Below are positions 9,101-58,900 of a DNA stretch of 64,000 nt, piece after piece (within the stretch, counting starts at the first letter, position 1; the number at the start of each line of letters is the position of its first letter). The notes beneath the pieces are model-generated. The model searched no databases. It was not told where the DNA came from and was given only the letters and a program-made list of their open reading frames with translations. A program made the position numbers and the translations under genes. Location of the stretch: the NCBI GenBank assembly GCA_002269645.1, contig NIVC01003065.1, positions 1 through 64,000 of the forward strand. Reading direction: 5' to 3'. Source of the DNA: Macrostomum lignano. Taxonomy: Eukaryota.

Positions 9101-9347
9101 GCGCCTTCTCGTTGTAGTTGTCGCCGTCGGCTAGGAACTCGATGAGGGTCGGGACGATCTGCGGCGCTACGTCCGGGAATCGGATGCAGGCGTTGTGCAG
9201 GGTTCGAACCAGCAGCTGACGGTAGCGGCCGGTCTCCTCCTGAGCCATGGGGATTCGGTTGGGGCGGTAGACTTAGCCCGTCAGGGATCGGAGAGACAGA
9301 CAGACAGACAGATAGACAGACAGACAGACACAGACAGACAGACAGAC

Positions 9348-9408
<61 letters not shown>

Positions 9409-9409
9409 C

Positions 9410-9444
<35 letters not shown>

Positions 9445-9481
9445 CACACACACACACACACAGACAGACAGACAGACAGAC

Positions 9482-9520
<39 letters not shown>

Positions 9521-9533
9521 CACACACACACAC

Positions 9534-9600
<67 letters not shown>

Positions 9601-9603
9601 CAC

Positions 9604-9654
<51 letters not shown>

Positions 9655-9665
9655 CACACACACAC

Positions 9666-9727
<62 letters not shown>

Positions 9728-21100: not shown

Positions 21101-23416
21101 ATCTGAGTGGATGCCATTTCATCTGAGTGAATGCCATTTCATCTGAGTGGGTGCCATTTCATCTGAGTGGGTGCCATTTCATCTGAGTGGGTGCCATTTC
21201 ATCTGAGTGGGTGCCATTTCATCTGAGTGGGTGCCATTTCATCTGAGTGAATGCCTTTTCATCTGAGTGGGTGCCATTTCATCTGAGTGAATGCCATTTC
21301 ATCTGAGTGGGTGCCATTTCATCTAAGTGAATGCCATTTCATCTGAGTGAATGCCATTTCATTTGATCTGAGTGGATGCCATTTCATCTGAGTGAGTGCC
21401 ATTTAATCTGAGTGAATGCCATTTCATCTGAGTGGGTGCCATTTCATCTGAGTGGGTGCCATTTCATCTGAGTGGGTGCCATTTCATCTGAGTGAATGCC
21501 ATTTCATCTGAGTGGGTGCCATTTCATCTGAGTGAATGCCATTTCATCTGAGTGAATGCCATTTCATCTGATCTGAGTGGATGCCATTTCATCTGAGTGA
21601 ATGCCATTTCATCTGAGTAAATGCCATTTCATCTGAGTGAATGCCATTTCATCTGAGTGGGTGCCATTTCATCTAAGTGGGTGCCATTTCATCTAAGTGA
21701 ATGCCATTTCATCTGAGTGAATGCCATTTCATCTGACTAGGATGCCATTTCATCTGACTAGGGTGCCATTTCATCTGAGTGGGTGCCATTTCATCTGAGT
21801 GGGTACCATTTCATCTGAGTGAATGCCATTTCATCTGAGTGGGTACCATTTCATCTGGGTGGGTGCCATTTCATCTAAGTGGGTGCCATTTCATCTGAGT
21901 GGGTGCCATTTCATCTGAGTGGGTGCCATTTCATCTAAGTGGGTGCCATTTCATCTGAGTGGGTGCCATTTCATCTAAGTGGGTGCCATTTCATCTGAGT
22001 GGGTGCCATTTCATCTGAGTGGGTGCCATTTCATCTGAGTGGGTGCCATTTCATCTAAGTGGGTGCCATTTCATCTAAGTGGGTGCCATTTCATCTGAGT
22101 GGGTGCCATTTCATCTGAGTGGGTACCATTTCATCTGAGTGAATGCCATTTCATCTGAGTGGGTACCATTTCATCTGAGTGGGTGCCATTTCATCTAAGT
22201 GGGTGCCATTTCATCTAAGTGGGTGCCATTTCATCTGAGTGGGTGCCATTTCATCTGAGTGGGTGCCATTTCATCTAAGTGGGTGCCATTTCATCTGAGT
22301 GGGTGCCATTTCATCTAAGTGGGTGCCATTTTATCTGAGTGGGTGCCATTTCATCTGAGTGGGTGCCATTTCATCTGAGTGGGTGCCATTTCATCTGAGT
22401 GGGTGCCATTTCATCTAAGTGGGTGCCATTTCATCTGAGTGGGTGCCATTTCATCTGAGTGGGTGCCATTTCATCTGAGTGGGTGCCATTTCATCTGACT
22501 GGGGTGCCATTTCATCTGACCGGGGTGCCATTTCATCTGACTGGGGTGCCATTTACTCTAAGTGGGTGCCATTTATCCCTGGCTACTGATCTTGCCCATG
22601 CCATGCTTTGCCCCTAATTTCACACACCTGGTAAAGCTCGGGCGGCAATCCATAACCGTCAGGGATAGCTTCAAATTTAGGTGGCAACTCGCCAGTTGGC
22701 ATCCGGGCAGCGTGTTGAAATTGCCTCTGGTGTCCCTGCTTCTTTTCAAAGTGTTTCCTTCGCTCCGAGAAGTGATAAATTAGGCGGAACAGGTCCCAGT
22801 CCATGTAGTCCAGCACCATGTAGCAATCGGGTCCAATTTCCAGCACGTCGCGAAGACTGTTAAAATATTTCAATAGCCATTACAATCTCCTTTTAACAAA
22901 ATCATGGAACTGTTGCATCAAGCTACTCATGAGAGTAGCCTGTTGTGCGTGCCTTCATTATTTCTCCACAGATAAGAATTTTAATCCATCAAGGTAATGC
23001 CTCTGGTCCAGTCTAGAAACAGAACAAGAAAGTCGTTACTTACTTAACAATGTTGCTATGGTTGGTTCGTTTCAACTCGATCAGGATGCTAATCTCCTTT
23101 AGTGCTGGCAGAGGCGCGCCATTGAAATCGTTGTCGAACCTGATTGGGATTGGAGAAGAATATTGAAATTTTTACATGTACATATTTTTTATTCAATAGG
23201 AAAATTTATGAATTTTTTGTAAATTTAGGTTGTAGCTAAAATAATTGAAATCAAAACTATGCTGACTTACCTCTCAGCTTTAAATTTCTTCAAAGCAACA
23301 GGCCGATTGTGGAGATTGTCCCAAGTCTTGTAGACTACACCATATGTGCCTGAGCCAATAATTTCCATGATAGAGTATTGGCCACAACTGGCCGCCAGGA
23401 TTGGTATTAAGTCTTC
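18116..23416 (-). CDS. Divergent cyclin-dependent kinase, about 356 aa, 7 exons: 23416-23271, 23139-23044, 22856-22628, 20887-20615, 19989-19920, 19800-19673, 18244-18116; start codon not found
   Basis: Motifs: GSGTYGVVY, VALKK, PSTAIRE-equivalent GAPLPALKEISIL, HSNIVNLRDV, HRDIKPANIL, DFG, VVTLPYRAPELLLG, DVWSVGC, GDSEIHQL, GTPD..W.GVEQLPDY, LDPTKRSTASAALKHKFF. All introns are GT-AG and the phases join in frame. Confidence 0.92.
18422..19590. mobile_element. Possible hAT-type non-autonomous element enclosing the 20-bp minisatellite
   Basis: Imperfect TIR TAGTGGCGCACGAAGGAGG / CCTCCCTACGCCACTG. The 8-bp flanks match at only 5 of 8 positions (TCTAACTT vs CCTATCAT). Confidence 0.45.
18481..19525. 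repeat. 20/21-bp GC-rich minisatellite (CCACCAAGAGACAGGGGCGC), about 50 copies, in the last CDK intron
   Basis: Read directly; the ORFs over it have a 20-aa period (WWAPLSLGGRPCLLVGAPVS). Confidence 0.96.
20129..20563. repeat. (ACCAG)n / (AACAG)n pentanucleotide microsatellite
   Basis: Read directly; gives the QTRPD and WSGLV repeat ORFs. Confidence 0.97.
20955..21000 (+). pseudogene. 5S rRNA-like fragment (internal control region), possibly a SINE3-type remnant
   Basis: GAAAGTTAAGCACACTTGGCTGCGGTTAGTAC resembles the 5S segment GAAGTTAAGCA...GGC..CGGTTAGTAC. Box C is absent. Confidence 0.35.
21040..22575. repeat. 20-bp minisatellite (GTGGGTGCCATTTCATCTGA), about 75 copies, in a CDK intron
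   Basis: Read directly, with GTGAAT, CTAA and GGTACC variants. Confidence 0.97.
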
Positions 23417-26250: not shown

Positions 26251-27627
26251 AGCTGTGTCCGTGTCACGTTCTCCTTACCGATAATCTCGATCTGTTTTTG
26301 TCTTCATGTTTCCGATAACAATTTTTACACCGATTTCCTGGATGTTTATTACGCATTTTTGTGACATTTAAACTAATAATCGAGTACATTAATTGTCCTA
26401 GATTTTTTTGTTTTATTTTATTGCTGAAGAAATCTAGCTGTTCAAACTTCACAGCCTAAAATTAATCTGTGTAGCTCCATTTTGAACTTTCAAAACTCGT
26501 TTTCTAGATCAGAATTCAGACAGATTTATCACCTGAAGTCCTTCAGGCATCACGGAACGATGAGGGACAGATTGTAGAATGAAGAAGGTATGCGCTACAC
26601 TTTTAAGTCGTGCGCGATTTTTCTCTGCAAAAAGCATATATATTTACGAACGAGATAGGAAGTTTTCCATTGATAGTTTTTAGCCCTAATTACATAGTCT
26701 AAAAGCCTTGCAAGTCACTCCCGCTGACTCACGTACGAGTTAAACCGTTTCCAATATTTGCGTCAAAAAAAGAAGTCCTGTAGGCCCATTTTAAGCCTGT
26801 TTAATTTTAACTATCTATCATAATAGTAGCTGGGTTATTCGACTCATGATCGATGTCTGGGAATTCCAAAAAACACCGGCCAAAGTATCTTCGCGGTAAA
26901 ACGCGTCCATGATCAATGCTATTTAGACTGATGAGAGCCCACATCTAAGGCACAGAGAGTGTGTATCTCGTTGTTACTCGTATATAGCGTCGTACCTACA
27001 ATCTACTAAATAGTCTAAGGCGACGACTATTGACTATATGGGCTAAAAAGGTAAGCAGCCATGGAAATGTAGCTAGGTGGCATTTTGATGAAATAATGTT
27101 TTATTATTAGTCAACGCGGAGGACAGCCCCGTCCCTACTGCAGTGTTTATGCACTGTGTTTATGTTCGCGCGGAGAGAATAGATTAGTTTAGTCTGGCTT
27201 GTATAGTCTCTGGCTGCATAATTCCGAACTGCAGCTTATGGAACCATGGGATAGCGATTTAGAATTAGGGACGTTTCCAACCGCGGCACTGCACGGATAA
27301 GAGAGAGATAAAAACAAACTTTTCGGACAAAGAAGATTTTCCCCGACTAGAGCGCCGTGCCCTATCTCTATCCCGGTTGTTCATCAATTCCTTTTTTCCC
27401 AGTAGCTTAAAATTGTTTAAACTTTGCGCAATGAGTCACTCTGAAGCTGTCAAGGTGAGAGTTGCCAGAAAAAAAACAGATTTTATGAACTTTTCTCCGT
27501 CTAGTTCATAAAAGTATGGTTCAAGCTGATTGTAGCTACGATCTCTGATGAAAATTTAAGCAATAAATTAAAAGGCCGAGTCTGCCGCTCAACCTCAACC
27601 TCTCTCATCCTCCGTCCGTTCACTTGA

Positions 27628-28993
27628 CGCATCTCAGGACACTAATTTGGCGCCTCTCAGGACACTAATTTGGCGCATCTCAGGACACTAATTTGGCGCA
27701 TCTCAGCACACTAATTTGGCGCATCTCAGGACACTAATTTGGCGCATCTCAGGACACTAATTTGGCGCATCTCAGGACACTAATTTGGCGCATCTCAGGA
27801 CACTAATTTGACGCATCTCAGGACACTAATTTGGTGCATCTCAGCACACTAATTTGGCGCATCTCAGGACACTAATTTGGCGCATCTCAGGACACTAACT
27901 TGGCGCATCTCAGGACACTAATTTGGTGCATCTCAGCACACTAATTTGGCGCATCTCAGGACACTAATTTGGCGCATCTCAGGACACTAATTTGGCGCAT
28001 CTCAGCACACTAATTTGGTGCATCTCAGCACACTAATTTGGCGCATCTCAGGACACTAACTTAGCGCATCTCAGCACACTAACTTGGTGCATCTCAAGAC
28101 ACTAATTTGGCGCATCTCAGCACACTGACTCAGCGCAACTCAGCACACTGGCTCAGCGCATCTCAGGACACTGACTCAGCGCATCTCAGGACACTAACTT
28201 AGCGCATCTCAGGACACTAATTTGGTGCATCTCAGCACACTAACTTGGTGCATCTCAAGACACTAATTTGGCGCATTTCAGGACACTAATTTGGCGCATC
28301 TCAGGACACTAACTCGGCGCATCTCAGGACACTAACTCGGCGCATCTCAGGACACTAATTTGGCGCATCTCAGGACACTAATTTGGCGCATCTCAGGACA
28401 CTAATTTGGCGCATCTCAGGACACTAATTTGGTGCATCTCAGCACACTAATTTGGCGCATCTCAAGGACACTAATTTGGCGCATCTCAGCACACTAATTT
28501 GGCGCATCTCAGGACACTAATTTGGCGCATCTCAGCACACTAATTTGGCGCATCTCAGCACACTGACTCAGCGCATCTCAGGACACTAATTTGGTGCATC
28601 TCAGGACACTAACTTGGTGCATCTCAGGACACTAACTTGGTGCATCTCAGGACACTAACTTAGCGCATCTCAGCACACTGACTCAGCGCATCTCAGCACA
28701 CTGACTCAGCGCATCTCAGGACACTAATTTGGTGCATCTCAGGACACTAACTTGGTGCATCTCAGGACACTAACTTGGTGCATCTCAGGACACTAACTTG
28801 GCGCATCTCAGCACACTGACTCAGCGCATCTCAGCACACTGACTCAGCGCATCTCAGGACACTAATTTGGTGCATCTCAAGGACACTAACTTAGTGCATC
28901 TCAAGGACACTAACTTAGTGCATCTCAGGACACTAACTTAGCGCATCTCAGGACACTAATTTGGCGCATCTCAAGGACACTAACTTAGCGCAT
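27628..28993. repeat. 23-bp minisatellite (GCATCTCAGGACACTAATTTGGC), about 59 copies
   Basis: Unit spacing of 23 bp (27638, 27661), with clustered CACTGACTCAGC variants. Confidence 0.97.
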
Positions 28994-29469
28994 TGGACCC
29001 TTGCCAATATCCGCCGCTTTCCCCTTCTCTAGCCCTCATCTGCTTGGATCCCTTCCAGTCTCCGATTACCACAGAAGGCGCTATATATGCATATAGCAGT
29101 GTTAGTCTAGTCATTTGCATAGGGACTTTTATTCTTACGAGCGTATTCTAAAAAAATATCCACACCACTCTAATATAAATCGCCCTCCCCCCAATTTGTT
29201 ATACTGAATAATTTGCGGTCGTCCCCAATCCTGATTGAACTGCAGTTGGCATCCTAATCCATCTTCACCAACGGCAACGGTTGAGGAATTCAGAAAAGAT
29301 TTCCTTAAAACCAGCGTAATCCGCGGCGCTTTGGGAGCCAAAAAGATGCATGGCTTTTGGATGCAAACCGGTTTTATGCTACTTAATTACTGCTAAATCC
29401 AGTATAAATTATGCACTCAGGCGTCTGCGAAGTTTGGAATTAATCCCGAAGGGCACAGTGTCGATTAGG

Positions 29470-30585
29470 GTGTTAGTATAGCTTCAATCTGGGTGTCAGG
29501 AGCTTCAATCTGGGTGTCAGGAGCTTCAATCTGAGTGTCAGAAGCTTCAATCTGGGTGTCAGGAGCTTCAATCTGAGTGTCAGGAGCTTCAGTTTGGGTG
29601 TCAGTATAGCTTCAATCTGGGTGTCAGTATAGCTTCAATCTGGGTGTCAGGAGCTTCAATCTGGGTGTCAGGAGCTTCAATCTGGGTGTCAGGAGCTTCA
29701 ATCTGGGTGTCTGTATAGCTTCGATTAGGGTGTCAGTATAGCTTCAATCTGGGTGTCAGTATAGCTTCAATCTGGGTGTCAGGAGCTTCAATCTGGGTGT
29801 CAGGAGCTTCAATCTGGGTGTCTGTATAGCTTCGATTAGGGTGTCAGTATAGCTTCAATCTGGGTGTCAGTATAGCTTCAATCTGGGTGTCAGGAGCTTC
29901 AATCTGGGTGTCAGGAGCTTCAATCTGGGTGTCTGTATAGCTTCGATTAGGGTGTCAGTATAGCTTCAATCTGGGTGTCAGGAGCTTCAATCTGGGTGTC
30001 AGTATAGCTTCAATCTGGATGTCAGTATAGCTTCAATATGGGTGTCAGTATAGCTTCAATCTGGGTGTCAGTATAGCTTCGATTAGGGTGTCAGAAGCTT
30101 CAATATGGGTGTCAGGAGCTTCAATCTGGGTGTCAGGAGCTTCAATCTGGGTGTCAGGAGCTTCAATCTGGGTGTCAGGAGCTTCAATCTGGGTGTCTGT
30201 ATAGCTTCGATTAGGGTGTCAGTATAGCTTCAATCTGGGTGTCAGGAGCTTCAATCTGGGTGTCAGTATAGCTTCAATCTGGGTGTCAGTATAGCTTCAA
30301 TTTGGGTGTCAGTATAGCTTCAATCTGGGTGTCACTATAGCTTCAATCTGGGTGTCAGTATAGCTTCAATCTGGGTGTCAGTATAGCTTCAATCTGGGTG
30401 TCACTATAGCTTCAATCTGGGTGTCACTATAGCTTCAATTTGGGTGTCAGTATAGCTTTAATCTGGGTGTCAGTATAGCTTCAATCTGGGTGTCACTATA
30501 GCTTCAATCTGGGTGTCACTATAGCTTCAATCTGGGTGTCACTATAGCTTCGATTTGGGTGTCAGTATAGCTTCGATTTTGGTTA
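29470..30585. repeat. 21/23-bp minisatellite (GGAGCTTCAATCTGGGTGTCA / GTATAGCTTCAATCTGGGTGTCA) with a 111-bp higher-order unit
   Basis: The marker variant CTGTATAGCTTCGATTAGG recurs at 29711, 29822 and 29933. Confidence 0.96.
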
Positions 30586-31310: not shown

Positions 31311-34300
31311 ATGAAGTCGCAGTTGTTATTGCTATTAGCCTTACTACTAGTGACTCGAACTCATTGTCGCAACGGAGACTCTACAATTCGATTTCTAGTA
31401 GCAGATTCTGCTTTTGTGCTTCGCGGAGACAACAGCAGCGCTGGTGGAAGGTCTCTGCTAGGCTATCGAGTTGCAGTACTCAAGCAATCAAACGATCACT
31501 ACCTGCTGGTCTCCGATCCCAGAGCTGCAGCCGCAGGTACATCTGTCACTAGCGGAGTTGTCTACAGAGTGAAACTAACGGGCGACGAGTTCAACACGAC
31601 TAAAGAGCTGCGCAGCGTTAGCGCAGAGATTTTGTTTGACTTCGCTAGCCAAGACCGAGACCTGCACGCGAACAGAAGCGTAGTTCAATTCGGAGCGAGC
31701 ATTTCTACTCTACGAAATGGTCAGTTCGCGGTGTGCGCTCCTGGCTACAACTTTGCTAATAGTTTCAATCACTCGGTCACGCCGGGTCTCTGCGCCTATT
31801 GGCGATCGGTGAACTCTCGGCCGCGTTGGATACAGAAGGTATTCAAATACGAGCCCAATCACGTGCATGACAAGATGTTTGGCAACTGCATGGGCGGCTT
31901 TGACGCGATGCTATACGATCCCGTGGCGCCGAAACTGGCCATCTCTGGCCCGTTCTGCATGAAGGGCGGGCTAGCCTCAGTGTCCTTGACAACTAACGAG
32001 ACGACTTACGAAGAGTTTAAGATGGGAGACGAAAATGACTACTCAGGTTTTTCGTTGACTTGTGAGCCAGAAAAGCAGAACCCAGATCTGTACGCAACGG
32101 TGCCGCACTCCGCCAGCATAACCTTCACTTTGATGTGGCGAACACGACCGTCAAAAGTAGATCTTCAAAGAATCGTTATGAGAAGTGAAAACCCATACTA
32201 TAGTCACCTTAGAAAAGCATTTAACTACATGGGCTATTCGAGCGCTACAATAAAGTCAGTGAATCCGGTAACTAGAATAAACACTACCGCCATAATACTG
32301 GGCGCACCGTTTGAATCGAACAATTTGACCGTGAATTTCGGCTGCGTCTACATTGTGCCCGTTGAAGCCGACTGGACCGACAGTCAAAGAGATTCACTGG
32401 CTTTAAAGTCCGCTCCGGTTCGGTACTGCGGCAGCGACCCCGGTGGTCGACTCGGCATATCCGTGGTTAACATCGGCGACATCAACCACGACGGCAGTGA
32501 GGACTTTGCGGTTGGTTGTCCGGGCTGCGGCCCTAACGCCACGGGAGCTGTATACCTGTTTCTGGGACAGGGAAGCTATCGAGCTGAGCAAACACTTGAG
32601 CCGTTTGAGATTTTAGAAGCCACAACCGACTTATTCCCAGGCGTGTCTGGCCTGGGCTGGAGTCTGGCCGTAGCCGATGATCTTGATAAAAACGGAGAAA
32701 ATGAAATTGTAGCCACTGCCATCAACAGCGGTCACGTACTTCTCCTGCCAGCAAGGATTCTCATGAAAATGTCCATCGAGATTAAATCCCACGGAACTTT
32801 TATTAAAGATGTGAAATTTAGTGATCTTGAAAATCGAGAATCTATGGAAGTTGATATGGTCATTTCCTTCCGCACCGGCCCAGGTGGCGATGCCAGAAAG
32901 TACAAATTTGATTTCGAGGTGAAGCTTCAGGAATTCGTCGAAGCGCAGAGTCTTAAACGTTTTGACATCGAACCTGTTAGTCCCTCAACATCCAGACTTG
33001 ATTACTGGCAGCAAGTGGCTCGCAACGTCGACCCAAAGCAGATTAATTTGTTAGAATTTCCACTTAAATTTCGCATTAGTTTTCGATCGAATTCGACGCG
33101 ACATTTGCCAGCAAATATTCTGATGCGAGATCTTGCAGTTCTAGTTCGGTGGCGCATGAATAACCGCAAAGTCCAAGGCGGTCCTAATCATTTTTTCCCG
33201 GCTATTCTGTATGAAAATAAAGTGTTTCCAAATTATGACAACCAATTGACAGCTCGGATTTTTGGATTTCTGCCCGGTGTCTGTGAAGGTTCTTTTTGCG
33301 AATCGAAAGGCAACCTGAAACTGGAGCTACTGAATTCATCTCAGCTCACATTGAGCTCCTTCCAACCGATTACTGTGGCACTATTAGTTCGCAAGACAAC
33401 GCCAAGCATTTACTATGGCGGCTCGGCGATTCAGTTCGTCTTGTCCGACGGAATAAGTGTGATTGGTAACGCTGAAATTCACCAGAGAGGAGTCAGAAGC
33501 AAAGTTGCCTACTGGAGTGAGCACAATGAGTTGCTCATTACTGAACCGTACCCATTTCAGAACGATCTCTTAACTGAGAGCAATGAAGGCTACCTGAATG
33601 TCTACCTGCAGCTTCGTTTCGATGGAATGCGTTCAAACTATCGAGCTAGGTTCAATCTGATCAATATATTAGCCAATGAGGGATACGAATCCTACGTTAC
33701 GGAAGAAATAGACGAAACTGATAACGTACAATCGATTGATATTACGTTCAACACTTCACTGCTGTTGAAACTGCTGCCTCAGAATGAAGACACCACCGTG
33801 GTTGATCAGCGGAAAAGTACGGACGAGGCCTACTTAAAATCGCTGAGACAACGCGTGTCAGGAAGCGTCATTGGGCCGCCGTTGCAGCACACCTACGAGT
33901 TGTTCGCCGCCTCCAAGCCGATGCTGCCAGTCCGCGATCTGTCACTAACCGTGCGAGTGCCGTTCGCGACCGCGGACAACAAACTGCTGCTGTACTTTCC
34001 CAGGAAGAGCATCGGCTCATCGGTTCATACGGCGACGAGTCAAATACAGCCTGGCTTGCCGTTCCTTAGCAACGATATGGAAGGCTTTGCTGATAACAGC
34101 GACTACGAATGCCAACCGGTGGAGCGGGATTTAAGCGAACTTCTTTTCAAGCCGGACCTGGTGCTGCTGGAGATGAAGCACCGGACTAATGCATCAGCAA
34201 CGATGGCGCGACGGAGACGCGAGGCTCAGCAAACCAGCGCTGGAGCGGAAACCTCTCTGGCTGCTTTCAATTCTAGTTCCTTCGCAACTAGTGATTCCAA

Positions 34301-34841
34301 GGTGCTGCCTAAAAACAAAGAAGTAGAAACTATTCCATTGTTTGACTGTGAGAAGCCGCAGCAGGCCCCGTTCGCGTTCAAGTGCATCACCTTCAACTGT
34401 CGGGTGCGCACTATGATTAGTCGAAACGGTTCAGCGGACATCACGGCCGACAAAGTCTATCTGCACGTGCACGCAAAGATTTGGTCGCCAACGTTTTTCG
34501 ATGCCCGATTGAAAACGTTCAGCATTAGAAGCCACGTTGCTCTTCACTGGACGCGCTCCTTGGCCTTTCTGTCTGTGGACAAGACGGACAATTCCAGCAT
34601 CATGGAGACATTCCACTTTATCAACGCCGAATTCCCAATTGATGAGGAGATTCCTTGGGGCTACATTGTGCTAGCGATATTCCTTGGCATCTGGCTTCTG
34701 CTGCTGTGCATTATGCTTCTGTGGTACTGCAACTTCTTTAAACGCAACAGGCTCGACTATAACTCCTTGCCGCAAAAGGAGCCCGAAAGTCAAGCTGATC
34801 AAGATCCATTCTATTACATTGAGAACACGGATGCCACGTAA
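31311..34841 (+). CDS. Integrin alpha chain (no I-domain), 1176 aa, intronless
   Basis: Signal peptide MKSQLLLLLALLLV; FG-GAP repeats (FGASIS..VCAPG, MGYSS..LGAP, LGISV, LGWSLA); Ca-binding loops DINHDGSEDF and DLDKNGENEI; RRRR furin site at 34209-34220; TM GYIVLAIFLGIWLLLLCIMLLW followed by NFFKR. Confidence 0.95.
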   Translation: MKSQLLLLLALLLVTRTHCRNGDSTIRFLVADSAFVLRGDNSSAGGRSLLGYRVAVLKQSNDHYLLVSDPRAAAAGTSVTSGVVYRVKLTGDEFNTTKELRSVSAEILFDFASQDRDLHANRSVVQFGASISTLRNGQFAVCAPGYNFANSFNHSVTPGLCAYWRSVNSRPRWIQKVFKYEPNHVHDKMFGNCMGGFDAMLYDPVAPKLAISGPFCMKGGLASVSLTTNETTYEEFKMGDENDYSGFSLTCEPEKQNPDLYATVPHSASITFTLMWRTRPSKVDLQRIVMRSENPYYSHLRKAFNYMGYSSATIKSVNPVTRINTTAIILGAPFESNNLTVNFGCVYIVPVEADWTDSQRDSLALKSAPVRYCGSDPGGRLGISVVNIGDINHDGSEDFAVGCPGCGPNATGAVYLFLGQGSYRAEQTLEPFEILEATTDLFPGVSGLGWSLAVADDLDKNGENEIVATAINSGHVLLLPARILMKMSIEIKSHGTFIKDVKFSDLENRESMEVDMVISFRTGPGGDARKYKFDFEVKLQEFVEAQSLKRFDIEPVSPSTSRLDYWQQVARNVDPKQINLLEFPLKFRISFRSNSTRHLPANILMRDLAVLVRWRMNNRKVQGGPNHFFPAILYENKVFPNYDNQLTARIFGFLPGVCEGSFCESKGNLKLELLNSSQLTLSSFQPITVALLVRKTTPSIYYGGSAIQFVLSDGISVIGNAEIHQRGVRSKVAYWSEHNELLITEPYPFQNDLLTESNEGYLNVYLQLRFDGMRSNYRARFNLINILANEGYESYVTEEIDETDNVQSIDITFNTSLLLKLLPQNEDTTVVDQRKSTDEAYLKSLRQRVSGSVIGPPLQHTYELFAASKPMLPVRDLSLTVRVPFATADNKLLLYFPRKSIGSSVHTATSQIQPGLPFLSNDMEGFADNSDYECQPVERDLSELLFKPDLVLLEMKHRTNASATMARRRREAQQTSAGAETSLAAFNSSSFATSDSKVLPKNKEVETIPLFDCEKPQQAPFAFKCITFNCRVRTMISRNGSADITADKVYLHVHAKIWSPTFFDARLKTFSIRSHVALHWTRSLAFLSVDKTDNSSIMETFHFINAEFPIDEEIPWGYIVLAIFLGIWLLLLCIMLLWYCNFFKRNRLDYNSLPQKEPESQADQDPFYYIENTDAT

Positions 34842-38223: not shown

Positions 38224-38697
38224 TACTAAGAATTATTAAGCAGCACTAAGCTTTACTTTTAACGACTACGAGGCTGACATTAACTAGATACTTATATGCA
38301 TACGAGTTTTTTTTTACTTACTGAAGTTGGCCATAGATTATTGCAGCGGGCGGGATGCTGTGCGTTTCTCCCCGTTTCAACACGCCTAGGCTGACTATAA
38401 TTCTATGGCCAAGGGTATGTGAACAAATGCATGCTGCTTACAGCAGGAAGCAATTAAAAAATCGGAATTTCGTGGCATGAAAGCTAAAATAAGCCACTAA
38501 CTTTTAAGGCATATCATTTTTAACACACACTAATACTTGTGGAAGCAAGCAAAAGTGACACAACTTCTGGGACACCCCTCGTACATAAATATTAGTGCGT
38601 CACTGTCTAGAAGAGTACTGTATTTTTTCTGCAGTAGCAAATACTTCCACGCGCAAAGAATTTTGAGCCTATGTCTCTATGCATTATTTGGCGCGTT

Positions 38698-39233
38698 TGA
38701 GTAGTTAAGAGGATTAGTGAAGATGATTGAGTAGTCAAGAGGATTTTTTAAGATGTTTGAGTAGACAAGAGGATTAGTGAAGATGTTTGAGTAGCCATAA
38801 AGATTAGTGAAGATGATTGAGTAGCCATGAAGATTAGTGAAGATGTTTGAGTAGCCATAAAGATTAGTGAAGATGTTTGAGTAGCCATGAAGATTAGTGA
38901 AGATGTTTGAGTAGCCATAAAGATTAGTGAAGATGTTTGAGTAGCCATGAGGATTAGTGAAGATGTTTGAGTAGCCATAAAGATTAGTGAAGATGATTGA
39001 GTAGCCATGAAGATTAGTGAAGATGTTTGAGTAGCCATAAAGATTAGTGAAGATGATTGAGTAGCCATGAGGATTAGTGAAGATGTTTGAGTAGCCATAA
39101 AGATTAGTGAAGATGATTGAGTAGCCATGAGGATTAGTGAAGATTATTGAGTAGCCATGAGGATTAGTGAAGATGTTTAAGTAGACAAGAGGATTAGTGA
39201 AGATGATTGAGTAGCCAAGAGGATTAGTGAAGA
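38698..39233. repeat. 30-bp minisatellite (GAGTAGCCATGAAGATTAGTGAAGATGTTT), about 18 copies, with alternating ATAA/ATGA variants
   Basis: Read directly; the ORFs over it have a 10-aa period. Confidence 0.96.
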
Positions 39234-39444
39234 GGGGGTTGCAACACAGCAACACAAACCCTGGCCCTCCCAAACGCACCCCGACACAACATCGAAGTGA
39301 TCTCACCTCAACTACAAGGCAAATTATAAACTTTACCGTCGATATTTAAACATTAAGTTTTGCCGATAAGTCACCGATAAAAAACCGAGAATCAAATGTG
39401 CGTACTCTTCTTTGATGTGTAATTCACTTAATGTAATTTCACTA

Positions 39445-39518
39445 GGGGGTTGCAGCCTAGTGGTTAAGATCGCGTCAGACTCATAACTGAAAGCTCGGGG
39501 TTCGATTCTCGACCCCCT
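39445..39518 (+). pseudogene. tRNA-Met(CAT)-like sequence, probably a pseudogene or SINE head (possible body to an A-rich end near 39650)
   Basis: Acceptor stem GGGGGTT/GACCCCC, A-box GCAGCCTAGTGG, anticodon arm TCAGA-CTCATAA-CTGA (1-nt deletion), B-box GGTTCGATTC. The T-stem is imperfect. Confidence 0.7.
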
Positions 39519-40029
39519 CGATAAACTTACTTGATTAAACTTAATTGCAAGTGTGCATCTCAAAGGAAGAACCAATGCTTACTTCGTTTGAGATTCTGAC
39601 GTTCAGAAGGTGAGGCATTAGGAATTTAGGTAAAAAAACGAAAAAAACATGCATATCTACCTTGCTAGCGAAAAACGAATTTTGATGATAATATTTTAGT
39701 GTACTTTTACTTGTGCTTCGTTGTCTGTAATTGGTCTTGCATCGATTTGTTTATTAGCGTGACTCAGAATTGGCCAAAACAAGATTTCATCTGTCAGAGT
39801 TTCATGAACTTCACGTTTATCACAATTTCAATGTTCAATGCAGACAGTTGGTTTGTAAACTGGAAACTTGAAATGCTGACCAGAGAGAATCTCTAACCGA
39901 ACTTCCTGCACTCTCTGCTGTGCAAAGCACCGTGCTGGACTTTATTTATTGGCATTTTCCGTCAAGCATTAGACAAGCGTGCAACTGCAGACTTCAGAAA
40001 ATGAAATTTTCAAATACCATTAGAGCGAT

Positions 40030-42163
40030 ATGAAGTTTCTGGCTTACATTCTGCTTACTGTATCTGCCATTGAAGGTTTCACAGCCGCGCCTTCGGGACT
40101 GTGTAAGATGGCGGCAGTGTGGTGATTGTCCATATTCTTTTGAATAATTAGAATTTGAAGGAAAATTTTTTATATAAATTTAAATGCTTCAGGTCGACTA
40201 AAAATCGCTCGCAACAGGATCGCCAGCACATGGCAGTCATCTTACTATACAACAGCCAATAATGAATCAACGTGCTTTAACTCTCAATCAGAAAGCAAGT
40301 CGGGACAATGGGACTTCATTCATTCCGGTGAATACAGCTCGTCGGCAGTTGACGGATTTCATTGGTTTGTCATTTTGCTAAATCAGAGTGAAAAAATTTG
40401 GTCGGTCTCTGTTGAAAGTAGAGGTAAGGACTTCAGAAGCTTACTGAACATCGGTGGCTTGCTGTGCATGTGATGGCTTAATGAAACTTTTCAATAAAAC
40501 ATTTCAGCTGATTCCATAGTAAAAGGCCGCGCAGTAGACGTTGAGCTTTACGCCTCACAGTTGGATTTGAGCAGCCAGCTCGGCCCCGAGCACTGCAGCT
40601 CTGAGCAAATCCGTTCGGTTTTCATTTTGAACCCGTCAGCTTGGAACTACTGCGGCAAAACAAAACCACATGCACATGTGAATGACAACTACCTGACTGT
40701 AAGATGCGACCAAACGGTGCGTATAAGTCGCAGTAATCTGTTTAGTTTGCCATTCTCTTTTTATAAAACTATTTCTATTTTAAACCTATTCAGGTTCGTA
40801 TGTTGTTGCTTAGAAAGTTCGTTAGGAACTTGTCGAATAGGGATCATCAGTGCATGAACATTGTGAACATGTGGTTGAATCACGTTTATATAAACTGTAA
40901 GTTTTTTTCAGTATAATTTTATTGCTTGCAAAAAACATATTTGATTCTTTTGTCTTAGGACTCTTGTTTGAATTCTTATTTCTAGTATATAGGACTAGTA
41001 ATCTATTGCCCCCTTTCGGGGGGCTAATAAGCAAGGGACGGATATTATTTATGTGAATTCTGTTTTCCTGCAATTCTGGGGGATCTTAGTGTTAGTATAT
41101 AAGATAGGTTATTTCGCTTTTGTTATTATTTTGGAATAGATCAGTCACTAGCATTTCAAACTATCAATAATTTTTTGTTTAGCTTCGTACAAAAACAGCT
41201 TCAAAATAATGCAACCTACATACGTCAGATCTGCCAGGCCGATACAAAATCACCACAGAATTCGGCAACTGCAATGCAGCATCAGCTCCAAGCGCTGATA
41301 TCAAATTCACCTTTGAGTCTCCAGATGCATCCACGCACCTGTGCAGAGCATCAGACTCTAACGGCAAGCAGTTGAAAATTACGGCCGTGAAAAATCCAAC
41401 CTGCGATGTGGCTGACAATGTCCTGAGGTCCCAGTGGCTGTGCTCGAATTGTAGCAGCTCAGCCAATGTGTCAGTAATCTGCCAAGCAGATAGTCAGCAT
41501 CAAGTTAAACAGTTCATTACTACGGATTGCGCGAAGAGTAGTAAGTTATTTTTTAAAATTACATGGCAGAAGGGAAACATTTTTGCAGAAAATATTTATC
41601 ATATTTGTCGTCAAAATTTTAGATATTTTGTTTGTGGTCAAGGTGCTGACAGTTATTTTCACTTCGTTAGTATTGGCGTGCGTTTTAATCATCTTTGCTC
41701 TCAAGAAGGTAAGAATTGTGCAATGCAGAACTTCAGTCTGCTAAACAGAGTGCTACCAGTAAACTAACTTGAGCTCCATTTATACTTGTACAAACCATCA
41801 GTTCTGCAGTCAGCCTCGGAGCAGCAAAAAAGAACTCCCAGATGAACCTCCAGCAGCGGTCCCTTCTCAGCCAATGACCGACTTGAACCTCGATGCCGAG
41901 CAAGCCGGGGCAGCAACAACCACAGCCAATGTCGCCCAGCCCAGCATATCAATGCAAGCAGCAGCTGCCGATGAGTTTTACATTAACTCTAAACTCTTTC
42001 GGGTGAGTCTGGAGATTATCAAAACAAGATTGGTCCCTTTATTTTCAAGTTTACATTGTCCATTCCCATCAATACTTGCGTGTCGCAGAGCAGAAGGCTT
42101 AACGGAGACGTCACCGAATATTTGGACATCGTCTCAATTGGCGTTGTGCGGCAACCAAAATGA
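40030..42163 (+). CDS. Uncharacterised type I transmembrane receptor-like protein, about 429 aa, 8 exons: 40030-40102, 40193-40423, 40508-40716, 40794-40896, 41229(?)-41540, 41623-41708, 41802-42002, 42089-42163
   Basis: Signal peptide MKFLAYILLTVSAIEG; consecutive GT-AG exons join in phase (1,1,0,1,1,0,0); TM exon NILFVVKVLTVIFTSLVLACVLIIFALKK; cytoplasmic tail ends ...VTEYLDIVSIGVVRQPK*. The exon 5 acceptor is uncertain because the stronger AG at 41182 leads out of frame. Confidence 0.8.
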
Positions 42164-43076
42164 TTTTTGGCATGTTCAATGAACGAAAAAAATGTTTCGT
42201 TCAGAACTACTAATTGGATCGTGGGTTCTGACAGTCTATTGGCGAGTGATGTTTGTAATTATTAAATGAAAGGTTTAATTCGATAACTCGCTGCCACCTC
42301 TAGAATTTGTGGCTTTTTAATCCTAGTACTTAAGGTAAAAAACACACTAAGCAATAAGCAATGTTATCCTTCTTATTTATTGTTTTCCAATACCGTCTGC
42401 TTTGTCAGAGCAAAGTCCAACTGCTTTCTATTTTTTGCTATCTCAGCAGCCCACCATTTAATCTAACTGCTAACATTTCCCCTGAAAAAAGCTACTTACA
42501 GTAGCGTAAAAGCAAATCTGCTTATTACGTAATTATATTAACCACTACACTTACTCAATCGCTGGCTTCTGACTAAGCAATCGAGAAAGTAAATGCATAT
42601 GCATAATTACGCTGTTTTGTGTAGGTACTCGTAATGATAAAATGGCGGTATTTTAGTTTTTTAAATGTATTTTTGCTTAAATTTTGTTAACACACCCATT
42701 ATCCATATATACTTTCACTAACCAAGCATACATTTAATGAAAACGCCTATTAATTCGTCATTGCACTAGTAATAACTATATCCAAGAGCTTTCAATTTTG
42801 ATTCAAAGGAAAAACCTTGTAGTGTTCATCAACGCAAAGGCTGTGCGTGTAATGTAATTTCAGTCACGTTAATCTCATTAACAGTGAGCTTTTTTCAAAA
42901 ATCAAATCAAAAAAACAATCTACAACAAAAAAAGAAAATTCAAGTAGCGGATGAGAATTCTAATTTTGCAATACAGTTTTTCTCATATATTACCAAATGG
43001 AGTAGGGTCTTGCATCGATTACATTTTCTTACAAGGAATATAAGGAAAATATAGTGTGATAGGAATAGGGACATAA

Positions 43077-45756: not shown

Positions 45757-46671
45757 ATGAGTTGCAGCATCCTAACTGGACTGATTTCGGTGATGCTGCT
45801 GCCACTCCTGGTGCACTGCGGCAATGGAACCCTGCACAGCAGCATCTCGCTCGGCGGCTGCGTGGTGCCGCAGACTCCGCAGCACTCGCTGGCGGCCTCG
45901 AGTGCCCGCATGTGCGCCTTCCTGTGCTCTCAGCTCCGTCGTCCCTGCATCGCCTGGAGCCACCGCGCAGGCGTCTGCAACATGTCGGACAGCCTCCAGA
46001 CCGCCAGTCTGACGAACGACACCGACTGCCTCGTCGCCTTCTGGCCCATGAGCAACGCCACTCGGACTCGCAATGTGGTCTCGAACAGCGGCCATCTCGA
46101 CCTGCAGGAGAACATCCCGATGCAGTACACGGACAGCGCCGTCAACTTCACTGGTCAGTCGGGTGTGTCAGAGCGGTTCAACATTGACCAGCTGACTTCG
46201 GTGTGTCTCACCAGCCTCACCATGTCAGTGTGGGTCAAGGTCACCAATGCCTCGAGAACCATGCTGCCACTTCTTGAGGGCATAACCATGCCTAATACAT
46301 TTCACACTCGACTGGGGCTTGAGCTGTCATTGTCTCGAATTCAGTTCATCGTTTTATCCCCACAGTCTAGCACCTTTATTCCTTTTTCAATGAACGATGG
46401 CACCGGCTGGACTCACATCGCGGCCGTTTACGACAGGGCGACACCGGGACTGATGATGAACATGTACATCAACGGAACTAAAGTCAACCAGGCAAGCGGC
46501 TCGGCGGCCACCCTGACATCTTGCGCGGACTTCGGCACCAGCGTGCAGATTGGAGCCACCAGCCGCTATGCCGAACATAACCGAGTGTTTCAGGGTTACA
46601 TGCGCTGCTTCGGAGTGTCGGAGAGAGCTCTGGGCCACAGTGAAGTTGCATCGTTGATGCAGCTGTGCTGA
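45757..46671 (+). CDS. Secreted protein, 304 aa: PAN/apple-like domain plus concanavalin A/LamG (pentraxin-like) domain; intronless
   Basis: Hydrophobic N-terminus ending ..LLVHC; SARMCAFLCSQLRRPCIAWSHRAGVCNM has PAN Cys spacing; SLTMSVWVK, WTHIAAVYD, MYINGT, VQIG and FQGYM are LamG-3 motifs. Confidence 0.88.
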   Translation: MSCSILTGLISVMLLPLLVHCGNGTLHSSISLGGCVVPQTPQHSLAASSARMCAFLCSQLRRPCIAWSHRAGVCNMSDSLQTASLTNDTDCLVAFWPMSNATRTRNVVSNSGHLDLQENIPMQYTDSAVNFTGQSGVSERFNIDQLTSVCLTSLTMSVWVKVTNASRTMLPLLEGITMPNTFHTRLGLELSLSRIQFIVLSPQSSTFIPFSMNDGTGWTHIAAVYDRATPGLMMNMYINGTKVNQASGSAATLTSCADFGTSVQIGATSRYAEHNRVFQGYMRCFGVSERALGHSEVASLMQLC

Positions 46672-54003: not shown

Positions 54004-55125
54004 CTACAGTCTGCATGTAAGAGTCGGTAAAATCCTGGAAATTGTCATGGAGTTATCCATTAACATCTTGTGAGTGTAGCTCAGGTGCATGAACTTGTGA
54101 ACTGTGAAAGAACTGTTCGGTATTTTCTTTGTCTCAAAGTTGGTAGCATTGAGCCGTTTGCAGTGCTGCTGCTTCATCTTGGGAAGACTCCCCAGATTCT
54201 TTGCCCGGCAAAGTTTCTTCAGCCTTTTTGGAATCCATGCCACATCCCAGAGGGGCTGGAAGGCGTCTGCCTCGGCCAGCATGTTGCCGCACCAGTCCAC
54301 AGGTCGGTCGCTCTGCTCCAGTGCCGTGTAATTCTTGTAGAATGTGTGCAGCATTCTGGGTCCCGTGACGTACACCGCATCGCGATGACCTCTCTTGGTC
54401 TTGTTGGCCCAATTCTGCTCAAACCATGTCGGCCAGGTCTTCAGCACGAAGCTCAGGAAGCTGTGATTCGCTCGGCTCATCATCACCGCATTCGAAATCA
54501 GTGCCGGAAGATTGAACGTGAAGACTGCGTGCTCAGTAGGCTCCTGACTCCACACTGCTGACTCACAGTCGAAATTCGAAGTCAGCCCCGCTCCCTGAAG
54601 CTGCGACGGTCTCAGCAGCGGTGTCGGATCTTGAAGCAGCTCCACATCCGTGTCGACGTACAGACCGCCGACGTGGTGCAGCACGACCAGACGGCCGATG
54701 TCCGATCGCTCCAGCCCGTTGACCAGCTTGCGGTAGCTTTGAACAAGGTACGGATAGTGCTTCGATATGAGCTCGGAGATCTGCTTGTCGTCCCAGTGCA
54801 TGAAGTGCCAGGCCTGGATTCGGCTACCGTTACTCAGCCGTGCCCAGGAGCGCACAATGGGAACCAGCTTGGCTGGCACTCGGCCGTCTTTGCTGGTCCA
54901 GTGCACCAGCGCCGGGATGGAGTCCGGGAACTGGGAGGGCAGCTCGCCGCAAGGCAGCCCGTCGTGCAACGGTAGAGACGTCGGCGTACGTGCAGCAACC
55001 TCCTGTGCTTTACGTTTATAGGTACGAGTCGTTTGCGCAATGAAATACGCTGTTCTAACTGACACGAATGTCAGGACAATTAAAATTAGCAGACGCTTTT
55101 GCTTCCATGTTATAATGTCGAGCAT
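54004..55125 (-). CDS. Glycosyltransferase family 32 (DXD, OCH1/SUR1-like), type II membrane protein, 373 aa, intronless
   Basis: N-terminal TM LLILIVLTFVSVRTAYFIA; IPALVHWT, SW...W..MHWDD, ERSDIGRLVVLHHVGGLYVDTDV, ISNAVMMS..NHSF, TGPRML. Confidence 0.92.
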   Translation of the reverse strand: MLDIITWKQKRLLILIVLTFVSVRTAYFIAQTTRTYKRKAQEVAARTPTSLPLHDGLPCGELPSQFPDSIPALVHWTSKDGRVPAKLVPIVRSWARLSNGSRIQAWHFMHWDDKQISELISKHYPYLVQSYRKLVNGLERSDIGRLVVLHHVGGLYVDTDVELLQDPTPLLRPSQLQGAGLTSNFDCESAVWSQEPTEHAVFTFNLPALISNAVMMSRANHSFLSFVLKTWPTWFEQNWANKTKRGHRDAVYVTGPRMLHTFYKNYTALEQSDRPVDWCGNMLAEADAFQPLWDVAWIPKRLKKLCRAKNLGSLPKMKQQHCKRLNATNFETKKIPNSSFTVHKFMHLSYTHKMLMDNSMTISRILPTLTCRL

Positions 55126-55957: not shown

Positions 55958-58900
55958 TTAATCAAACGGATAGGCTGTCGACGATACAGTCCATGTAACG
56001 CTAGAACTACCGATTGCGCTACTTGTAGTACTATCAGTAGTAGTAGAAGCAGTAGTTGTCGGCTGTATAGTTGTAGCCGGTACAAGGGTTGTGGGCACCA
56101 CTGTGTTGGAACAGTTCACAATCTGTACAGCCGAGATTGTGGCCTCCTCCTTGTGGTCCAGCATGTAGCTGGAGGTTACGGCGAAGTTGAATCGCAGGTA
56201 GACCAAATTCTCGTCCGTGGGTAGGGAGCAGAACCGGCTGGGTGAATGGGGAAGCATGGGATTGGGACTTCTGCTCAATTGGTGCTCTTCATCATAAGTC
56301 AAAAATAGTCTTAAGGGTGAGATTCTCAATAAAGATAAATATCGTATCAAGGTGAGATTTTTTAATCTGAGTAAGTCTCAAGGGTGAGATTCGCAATGAA
56401 GATAAACACAATCTCAAGGGTGAGATTCTCAATGAAGATAAACATAATCTCAAGGGTGAGATTCTCAATGTAGATGAACAATCTCAAGGATGAGATTCTC
56501 AATGAAAATTAACATAATCTCAAAGATGAGATTCTCAGTGAAGATAAGCACAATCTTAAAGGTAAGATTCTCAATGAAGATAAACACAATCTCAGGGGTG
56601 AGCTTCTCAATGATGATTAACATAATCTTAAAAGATTCTCAATGAAGATAATCACAATCTCAAGAATGAGATTCTGAATGAAAATTAACATAATCTCAAA
56701 GGTGAGATTCTCAGTGAAGATAAACACAATGTCAGGGGTGAGATTCTCAATAAAGATAATCATAATCTTAAGGGTGAGATTCTCAATGAAGATAAACGTA
56801 ATTTCAAGGGTGAGATTCGCAATGAAGATAAACATAATCTCAAGGGTGAGATTCTCAATAAAGATAAACATAATCTCAAAGGTGAGATTCTCAATGAAGA
56901 TAAACATAATCCCAAGGGTGAGATTCTCAATGTAGATGAACAATCTCAAGGGTGAGATTCTCAATGAAGATAAACACAATCTCAAGGGTGAGATTCTCAG
57001 TGAAGATAAGCACAATCTCAAGGTGAGATTCTCCCTACACACAAGACTCACACAAGAGACTCGGTGCTGTCAGTGGCAACCCTACAGACCAGCCGAGACG
57101 AAAGCAGGTGCAACGATCTCGGCCCAACGCTGGTTGTCAGAGTGTCATTGGCGGTCTCGCACAGGCTGGTGTCTCCGTAGGCAATGGACATTTCAATTTT
57201 GGTAACCGTGATAGAAAAATAATTATCGTTAGTTAAATTAACATGATTTTGTATGTCCATTGTCATTACTCGCTCTCTGTGGCTAAAGTACACAGCATAC
57301 GGTTGTAACAGAGGCTTAGTGGAAGTTAGAACAATTGATCTCGGCAATAGAAAGAACAATGAGCAGAAGGTGCCAATGAGCAGCAGCAGGCAGATGCTCA
57401 CAGTGACACCAATCCATAGTACAGTGCGTCTAGGTTTCAGCCGCTTGTCAGACAGTGGGATCAGGGCGACGTACTCGCGTTCTGAGTCTGGGTTGAATGT
57501 AGTACAAGTAAACAAACTTTTACAGTAAATGAACATATCAAGTATGTAAAATGCAAAATATTGAAAAAGGAAAACATGCAAATAAAGATTAATATTATTC
57601 TTTAAAATTAACTTAGTGTTTATAATTTCTGATCAGGTTTCTTTTATCTAGACTACTTATAGTAAGTAGTTTTGCGGATTATATGAGTATTTTAAAGTTA
57701 TAAAATAAGAATATAGGTGAATAATAATATTAGTATTAAAAATTCAAACATTAATTCTTACCTGTTAGTGATGTGAAATTCATTGAATATGCCTTCTAAT
57801 ATTGATTGACTCTTAACATTTTTTAAATTACTGGATGGGAAATCCTTGTTTTTTCTTCCCATTATACTTAGCTTGTACGAGTATATAAAACAGATATAAA
57901 TAAAGCTAAATAAAAATTATCACTTTTTTTAGCATATAAATTTCTTTATTTCTCCTTCATCTTTATTTATTGGAAATAGGATTAGCATAAAGGTTAAATA
58001 ATGCTAGACAGTTCCTTAAAGAAAAATGGGATTCAACAAGTTATCTAAATATACTATACTTATCTAATAATTAATATAGATATATTTATTAACTATCTAA
58101 AGCAACCACAATAAAAAGAGCACTGTGAACTTAAGAGACTAAATGGAGCCCAAAATATTTGGTCCCAATTTCTCCATGCCAATCCCTACATTTGGAGCCA
58201 AATAGCTCCTGTTATGCCTAAAACTGACCACTTTAGAATTCGGGGATCTCTGTGGGGAGAAATGGGGATTTCATGTGAACTTAAGACTTTAGAATGGAGT
58301 CTGAAGCATTGGGTCCCAGTTTCTCTATGCCAATCCTTTCATTTGGAGCTTCAAATGCTTAAATAACGAAATGACCATGATAAATGCTCTTTTTATATGT
58401 TTGTATGAAGGAATGAATTGCGCGACTTCGTGAACGCACCCGCGTCACCGCTGCCTGCTAGTTTTGCGCTCCCACTGGACACGCCGCTCCCAGATGAGGA
58501 GGACTTCTGCACCAGACCAGTCACCACGGAGGACGTTGTGCTTTTCGCTCGGAAAGCATCAGGCGGCAAGGCGCTCGGCCCCGACGAAGTTCCGGTCGAA
58601 GTGCTGCGGCTCCCCTGTGTGGCCTCCCAGGTCACAGGCGTCATGAACCGCGTGCTCGCCGGCGCTCCTGCGCGGCCTGCGCCCACCGAGTGGACCGTCG
58701 CACACATCGTGCTGATCCCGAAGAAGGCAGGGACAACGCGGAAAGAAGACCACCGCGGGATCTCGCTGATGTCCTGTACGGCAAAGCTCTTCAACCGGCT
58801 GCTGCTCGATCGCCTGCAGTCGGTGCTGGACCCATACCTGCGGTACGAGCAGAACGGATTCCGGCCGCAACGCGGTACAGTGACACAGATCCTCGCACTC

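Follow-up and report, generated by a model that had tools for sequence, protein, structure and literature searches.

A gene for a putative, divergent F-type-lectin-like type I receptor with a tyrosine-motif tail in Macrostomum lignano

What kind of cell-surface protein could be encoded at positions 40030–42163 (plus strand) of the Macrostomum lignano contig NIVC01003065.1 (assembly GCA_002269645.1), and what could it recognise? The window, i.e., the whole stretch of DNA that was analysed, comprises positions 1 to 64,000 of this contig (64,000 nucleotides). The locus carries a gene of eight exons that is intact and transcribed, with a product of 429 amino acids (aa), or 407 aa if the acceptor at 42094 is used. 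The gene encodes a divergent F-type-lectin-like type I receptor, the architecture of which is well supported, while glycan binding and tyrosine signalling may be its activities. Taken with this gene model, a glycan-sensing type I receptor signalling through its tail tyrosines is the favoured overall explanation, with a probability of roughly 0.55.

The gene model was rebuilt from the sequence. Eight exons, separated by short introns that all begin with GT and end with AG, give a coding sequence (CDS) of 1290 nucleotides without internal stops. The in-frame eight-exon structure of the original prediction, made from the letters of the DNA, was reproduced by this rebuild and is supported by two GenBank models, and all the peptides quoted in it (SAVDGFHWFVILLNQSEKIWSVSVESR, YLTVRCDQT/VRMLLL, DEFYINS and TEYLDI) are found in the rebuilt protein. 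The gene is not hidden, as had been supposed: GenBank already holds a hypothetical protein for it, and solely a prokaryote-style track of open reading frames (ORFs) failed to reveal it. The exons are as follows.

40030..40102, plus strand: exon 1, start codon (the same in both GenBank models) and predicted signal peptide (MKFLAYILLTVSAIEGFTAA, followed by PSGL); ends in phase 1.
40193..40423, plus strand: exon 2, first part of the F-type-lectin-like domain with WQSS, CF, FIHSG (H68), GFHWF (W82) and SVSVESR (R101).
40508..40716, plus strand: exon 3, middle of the lectin-like domain with R109, VDVELY, C131, C150 and LTVRC (C168).
40794..40896, plus strand: exon 4, final strands of the lectin-like domain (VRMLLLRK ... 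MNIVNMWLN).
41229..41540, plus strand: exon 5, Cys-rich second extracellular module; acceptor 41229 in both GenBank models.
41623..41708, plus strand: exon 6, transmembrane (TM) helix (ILFVVKVLTVIFTSLVLACVLIIFAL), then KK stop-transfer residues.
41802..42002, plus strand: exon 7, low-complexity cytoplasmic tail with DEFYINS (Y398, YxN); internal acceptor at 41854.
42089..42163, plus strand: exon 8, SRRLNGDVTEYLDIVSIGVVRQPK and the stop codon, bearing the T.Y.[DE]I[IV] motif.

The product deposited for the same locus is the GenBank hypothetical protein PAA53557.1 (P0001; BOX15_Mlig021334g1; 407 aa), which shows 100% identity to the rebuilt protein through exon 7 and then ends with ...KLFRKA, the CDS terminating at 42102. 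Use of an exon-8 acceptor at 42094, located 5 nt downstream of 42089 (cgcag/agcag/AAGGCTTAA), reproduces PAA53557.1 exactly, with the stop codon at 42100–42102. The sequence on record around this locus is the same, letter for letter, as window positions 30030–52102. PAA92527.1 (P0005; BOX15_Mlig026357g1; 429 aa), encoded on another contig, is the same eight-exon product, including the last exon, with 14 aa differences; both proteins share one 90% cluster. StringTie/TACO and TransDecoder were used to derive the deposited annotation of M. lignano from RNA-seq data (PMC5730564), which lends the splice junctions indirect support from transcripts. It is at exon 8 that splicing is really ambiguous (42089 or 42094), not at exon 5, where an alternative acceptor at 41183 had been proposed. 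Reading of the sequence confirms that this acceptor would shift the frame and lead to a stop about 38 codons further on, but no annotated model uses it (41229 is the acceptor in both GenBank models), and it was set aside.

Other forms of the transcript could also be produced. In the older gene models of the ML2 assembly (P0006 and P0008), exon 5 is joined to the internal acceptor 41854, so that the TM exon is left out without a shift of frame. Together with the tandem exon-8 acceptors, these models suggest forms without the TM helix and forms without the tail motif. Intron 4 (40897–41228) comprises 332 nt, about four times the length of the other introns, and contains a short GC stem capped by a TTTC loop (hairpin at about 41009–41022). 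No further copy of it was found in the window or in the fetched loci except the sister locus described below, and Rfam gave no match in 39000–43000. A 10-codon upstream ORF (40001–40033, plus strand; ATGAAATTTTCAAATACCATTAGAGCGATATGA) overlaps the main start codon by 4 nt and sits just after a possible acceptor (acttcag), a candidate trans-splice site.

The product is predicted to be a type I membrane glycoprotein, the tail of which carries no catalytic domain. The signal peptide, single TM helix and tail of about 90 aa expected originally are recovered in the hydropathy profile, which displays an N-terminal hydrophobic leader (from which the signal peptide was predicted), one TM helix at about residues 312–336 (Kyte–Doolittle value of 2.89 over residues 317–335) and a disordered, low-complexity tail of 94 aa without a Pfam domain. 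All five N-x-S/T sequons are N-terminal of the TM helix. The second extracellular module, a Cys-rich stalk (about residues 206–312), contains 7 Cys and 2 N-glycosylation sequons. It was found by a local hidden Markov model (HMM) only in the closest paralogues, the immediate subfamily; no relative was found in Pfam, and its profile gave only chance matches against the Protein Data Bank (PDB), with E > 3.

Which fold could be adopted by the N-terminal domain? The single sequence gave no Pfam match at E ≤ 10, and phmmer against the PDB gave only a chance match of the TM/tail region. A family profile (A2) composed of the N-terminal domains of 16 members gave five matches among PDB sequences, every one an F-type lectin domain: FBP32 (3cqo, E 1.9e-6), eel agglutinin (1k12, E 1.6e-3), lectinolysin (3le0, E 0.021, and 4gwi, E 0.031) and 2j22 (E 0.9). 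Weak Pfam matches among the 16 members, both under the gathering score, were to F5_F8_type_C (best E 3.6e-3) and F5_F8_type_C_2 (best E 2.6e-3).

An AlphaFold2 model of residues 20–215, calculated with the family alignment, has a predicted local distance difference test score (pLDDT) of 83 and a predicted template modelling score (pTM) of 0.81. Foldseek of this model against the PDB retrieved CBM32 modules, eel agglutinin 1k12 (E 7.3e-5, template modelling score (TM-score) 0.60 on the target) and the lectin domain of lectinolysin, as well as SUN2, APC10, BIRC6 and UBR4 domains at similar scores; a search of a viral structure library with the model retrieved F5/8C domains. The jelly-roll fold alone does not discriminate an F-type lectin, since it is shared with CBM32 and FA58C. 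A whole-protein AlphaFold2 model from a 3-sequence alignment (pLDDT 35.6) was not used for the fold search. Both lines, the family profile with its exclusively F-type PDB matches and the model with its Foldseek matches, bear out the F-type lectin/discoidin-like fold proposed earlier. The N-terminal domain is best read as truly related to F-type lectin domains, though divergent, with a galactose-binding-domain-like jelly roll.

F-type lectins are characterised by the fucose motif HX24RXDX4(R/K) and the calcium motif h2DGx; in eel agglutinin the sugar is contacted by His52, Arg79 and Arg86, and the Cys82–Cys83 bridge also touches it (PMC5712786). In the protein under study, R101 and R109 fall on the two Arg of the motif when aligned with either FBP32 domain or with eel agglutinin (R79 and R86 in the numbering of the review). 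In one of the three printed alignments that reach H68, the one with FBP32 domain 2, this residue matches the canonical 'HT' His. These positions are among the most conserved columns of the family (H68 in 12 of 13 sequences, W82 in 13 of 13, R101 and R109 in 11 of 13 each). H68, R101 and R109 could accordingly be considered a candidate His/Arg/Arg sugar-binding triad, and sugar binding by the ectodomain is plausible. The position of RAVDGN in lectinolysin is occupied by CF.xR... in the family, and RADSIVKGR is without a Cys-Cys pair. AVDG (residues 76–79), considered as an F-type calcium motif, was rejected; SAVDG had been quoted for the lectin-like domain, but it lies off the position of that motif and is unconserved in the family.

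How widespread is the family? An exhaustive HMM search covering 1.84 billion cluster representatives found 20 relatives, and all of those looked up are from M. lignano. A protein search with the spliced product returned M. lignano proteins only, and a further word-indexed search, run with the family alignment, gave 4 proteins and nothing new. The gene belongs to a family known so far only from M. lignano. The description of the receptor as an orphan holds outside this species but not within its genome, where the family forms at least 20 clusters at 50% identity. No paper on F-type lectins in Platyhelminthes was found in the literature by the combined term.

The relatives share an N-terminal domain of about 180 aa (WQSS..CF..[FY][FI]H[ST]..G[FY][HQ]W[FL].[VI].L....[IV].SVTV..R......R...[IV]E[IV]...C....W..CG.T...TV.C...R.LLLR). 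The domain of paralogue P0016 has introns at matching places: after the leader, just past the first conserved Arg, ahead of the R.LLLR strand by 1–2 codons, and where the domain ends. UniRef names of family members contradict each other (Sushi, Ig-like, fibrinogen C, LamG, ricin B, MATH, SET, coatomer zeta) and were rejected as evidence, because near-identical proteins bear unrelated names. The Sushi/CCP identity implied by the UniRef name of paralogue P0002 was likewise dropped, no Sushi model matching at E ≤ 10. In the older paralogue gene model P0004 (UniRef A0A1I8G181), residues 251–414 match the antisense translation of the exons of the gene (40527–42011, minus strand), and this chimera is therefore an annotation artefact.

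The most regular feature of the cytoplasmic tails is a tyrosine motif. In the 42089 isoform, TEYLDI (Y416) fits the T-x-Y-x-x-(I/V) consensus of the immunoreceptor tyrosine-based switch motif (ITSM); the 407-aa isoform does not contain it. The ITSM-like motif recognised originally is conserved in distant paralogues: it reads TEYLDIV in the window gene, TEYLEII in P0002, TVYLEIV in P0010 and TEYTEIV in P0016. T.Y..[IV] is positioned 11–16 residues from the C-terminus in 4 of the 7 divergent subfamilies with complete tails and is the sole recurring tail feature; none of 20,000 composition-preserving shuffles put it in four tails. Because the motif is conserved, the 42089 frame is probably the functional one, although the deposited model for the window copy uses 42094. 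Tails of other subfamilies end with YENSEYKLEN...YI. DEFYINS, likewise highlighted at the outset, is present in the protein as a YxN motif, but it is confined to the pair of gene copies, and the closest paralogue P0002 does not conserve it. The consensus (I/V/L/S)-x-Y-x-x-(I/V/L) of the immunoreceptor tyrosine-based inhibitory motif (ITIM) does not occur in the protein, and among the relatives it occurs only in P0016 (VVYAQV).

The gene exists in two copies. The sister locus is collinear with the window from about 29.9 to 43.3 kb, with long blocks that are 97–99.6% identical and two shorter end pieces of about 92%, and its gene copy, PAA92527.1, is 98% identical to the window copy. The DV1 assembly is known to be redundant (PMC5730564), which agrees with this two-copy arrangement. 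Exons and introns of the two copies are alike in divergence (22 differences per 1290 exonic bases versus 18 intron mismatches). According to the Nei–Gojobori method, synonymous divergence (dS) is 0.027 and nonsynonymous divergence (dN) 0.015, with dN/dS of about 0.55 on only 22 differences; both copies are intact. Five of the 14 aa differences are packed into residues 253–261 (41369–41395): Q253L, K255T, I256T, V259E and N261S. This local replacement hot spot in the Cys-rich module could form a variable contact surface. Position 42099 is T in the window copy and C in the sister (CTT versus CTC), so the TAA right after acceptor 42094 exists solely in the window copy; the sequence of the exon-8 acceptor 42089 is the same in both.

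In the proposed mechanism, the outer domain would bind a surface ligand such as a glycan, phosphorylation of the tail tyrosines would follow, and the phosphotyrosines would recruit SH2-domain proteins, resulting in ITSM/ITIM-like signalling. A tandem-SH2 phosphatase and Grb2 are assumed to be present in M. lignano, as in bilaterians generally. An immune or adhesion receptor role via phosphotyrosine, as suggested originally, is a reasonable but tentative reading. Several observations weigh against this mechanism. In the other two printed alignments that reach it, H68 lies 5 residues ahead of the canonical His, on its upstream side, and the loop carrying it is modelled with moderate confidence only. 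The motif of the protein, H68-x32-R101-A-D103-x5-R109, is not a literal HX24RXDX4[R/K], and D103 is unconserved; the h2DGx calcium motif and the vicinal Cys-Cys pair are absent at the homologous places of the alignment, and no model reached the curated Pfam threshold. As for the tail, the acceptor 42094 of the model deposited for the same copy drops the TEYLDI frame, TEYLDI alone is expected in about 1.3% of shuffles of the tail of the window gene, and the motif also fits the YxxPhi sorting signal. The literature and its supplements, searched for Mlig021334, Mlig026357, Mlig012130 and Mlig034318, yielded no expression, localisation, binding, phosphoproteomic or interaction data.

The last of the tail properties leads to an alternative in which the same ectodomain belongs to an endocytic or scavenger lectin receptor, and YLDI, YLEI and YTEI serve as YxxPhi signals for AP-2-dependent internalisation or sorting rather than for the docking of phosphotyrosine-binding proteins. 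Type I lectin receptors often carry YxxPhi sorting signals, and each of the four conserved motifs agrees with Y-x-x-[I]; however, Thr at −2 and I/V at +4 are also conserved, which exceeds the needs of YxxPhi, and paralogues P0009 and P0020 have pairs of YxN instead, which are typical Grb2-type SH2 ligands and not sorting signals. This explanation is considered unlikely. The tail might even have no dedicated signalling role, if the protein were an adhesion or gamete/self-recognition molecule of a fast-evolving lineage-specific family, with the ectodomain responsible for contact. The restriction of a strongly diversified family to M. lignano, the relaxed constraint between the copies (dN/dS 0.55) and the five replacements in residues 253–261 are in accordance with such a molecule, and F-type lectins act in fertilisation and adhesion elsewhere (PMC5712786), oyster bindins and Drosophila Furrowed being examples of such molecules. 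The conserved island within otherwise unalignable tails argues, on the contrary, for a tail function, and gonad or sperm expression data were not found in the literature; this possibility is regarded as improbable.

A comparably improbable explanation concerns the ectodomain, which could be a jelly-roll but not a lectin, i.e., a protein or lipid binder like factor V/VIII C, SUN or APC10, so that its F-type likeness would be only an ancestral fold signal. Similar Foldseek scores of SUN2, APC10, BIRC6 and UBR4 and the missing calcium motif, Cys-Cys pair and exact motif spacing agree with this, and sugar binding has been lost by some proteins with the F-type fold (PMC5712786). Nevertheless, the sequence profile matches F-type lectins only, and the family conserves the positions aligned with the sugar-binding His/Arg/Arg. 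It is very improbable that the window copy is a redundant duplicate becoming a pseudogene, with an early end (…FRKA and stop) and no useful selection. The deposited model does use 42094, with TAA following at once and a stop unique to this copy, the introns are as similar as the exons, and dN/dS of 0.55 is based on only 22 differences; yet the 8 exons, the splice sites and the 429-codon frame are all intact, and the 42089 acceptor sequence is the same in both copies. With dS of about 0.027, the copies have diverged too recently for any decay to be assessed.

Comparison with known systems places the gene most closely to the F-type lectins (eel agglutinin (AAA) 1k12, striped bass FBP32 3cqo and Streptococcus mitis lectinolysin 3le0), which have the same jelly-roll and are the only PDB sequences matched by the family profile. 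The aligned core ...W.V.L....I.SVT[IV]..R......R..G.EI is shared with them; both motif Arg positions match, and a His is conserved ahead of them. The identity in structural alignments is about 10–16%, however, and the window protein has a longer His–Trp loop, RxD-x5-R instead of RxD-x4-R/K, and neither h2DGx nor the vicinal disulphide; AAA and FBP32 are soluble, while it is anchored in the membrane and has a cytoplasmic tail. Planarians have F-type lectin domains, and membrane proteins such as Drosophila Furrowed also carry one (PMC5712786). Furrowed (CG9095) combines, like the window protein, an F-type lectin domain with a predicted TM segment, and an adhesion role has been proposed for it (PMC5712786), but it adds a C-type lectin domain and many CCP repeats, while the Pfam search of the window protein revealed neither Sushi nor C-type lectin domains.

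CBM32 and F5/8 type C (discoidin) modules are the best Foldseek matches (7jnf, 2j7m, 2j1e; TM-score up to 0.67 on the target), but they are absent from the profile search of PDB sequences, and CBM32 modules are appendages of bacterial enzymes. A functional analogy could be drawn with vertebrate lectin or Ig receptors that have ITIM/ITSM tails (Siglecs, PECAM-1 and PD-1), which have in common with the window protein the type I layout with an outermost ligand domain, a stalk, a TM helix and a membrane-distal TxYxx[I/V]. In contrast to them, the window ectodomain is not an Ig V-set and the tail is without a membrane-proximal ITIM; homology is not implied. No report of an F-type lectin domain coupled to an ITIM/ITSM-type tail was found in the literature as far as titles and abstracts tell, and papers naming both list them separately there.

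Directly upstream of the gene, an uninterrupted ORF of 1176 aa (31311–34841, plus strand) matches integrin-alpha Ig-like domain 3 and FG-GAP and is apparently an intronless integrin alpha-like gene. It belongs to the block shared with the sister locus, where its copy is annotated at just 645 aa. The following features were observed elsewhere in the window.

6181–10459, minus strand: ORFs with coatomer beta C-terminal/appendage domains and Adaptin_N, resembling exons of a COPB1-like gene and broken up by microsatellite and minisatellite arrays.
45757–46671, plus strand: ORF with a Laminin_G_3 (concanavalin-like) domain.
54004–55125, minus strand: ORF with a DXD glycosyltransferase sugar-binding region; an inverted copy is found in the sister locus (L002, 19654–20942).
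59065–59838, plus strand: reverse-transcriptase (RVT_1) fragment, probably a retroelement remnant.
18475–19525, 21041–22574, 27624–28993, 29468–30574, 38695–39233, 56376–57033 and others: numerous minisatellite arrays with periods of 20–36 nt and 18–76 copies, 0.5–1.5 kb each.

Long ACAG/AGAC/AGAT microsatellites occur across the window as well. Several long ORFs in the six-frame list are spurious owing to the minisatellite and microsatellite arrays.

In a broader and speculative form, which is rather unlikely to hold, Macrostomum would have evolved its own expanded receptor family, in which a divergent F-type lectin domain is combined with an ITSM-like tyrosine motif. Such a family could be a flatworm analogue of the vertebrate Siglec and paired-receptor systems, with glycan sensing in immunity, self/non-self recognition or mating; in some members an ITIM or YxN pairs take the place of the ITSM-like motif, and the motif or the TM helix may be missing from certain splice forms. 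If signalling by the tail is not confirmed, the product would be an ordinary lineage-specific surface glycoprotein. The tandem acceptors 5 nt apart would toggle the conserved motif, which provides a simple regulatory hypothesis. Little is known of innate-immune and cell-recognition receptors in flatworms, and M. lignano is a model species in which transgenesis is possible. The lectin domain, stalk, TM helix and tyrosine-motif tail together represent a new F-type lectin architecture, and assignment of the F-type fold and the tail motif gives about 20 sequence clusters, otherwise without domain annotation, a testable function.

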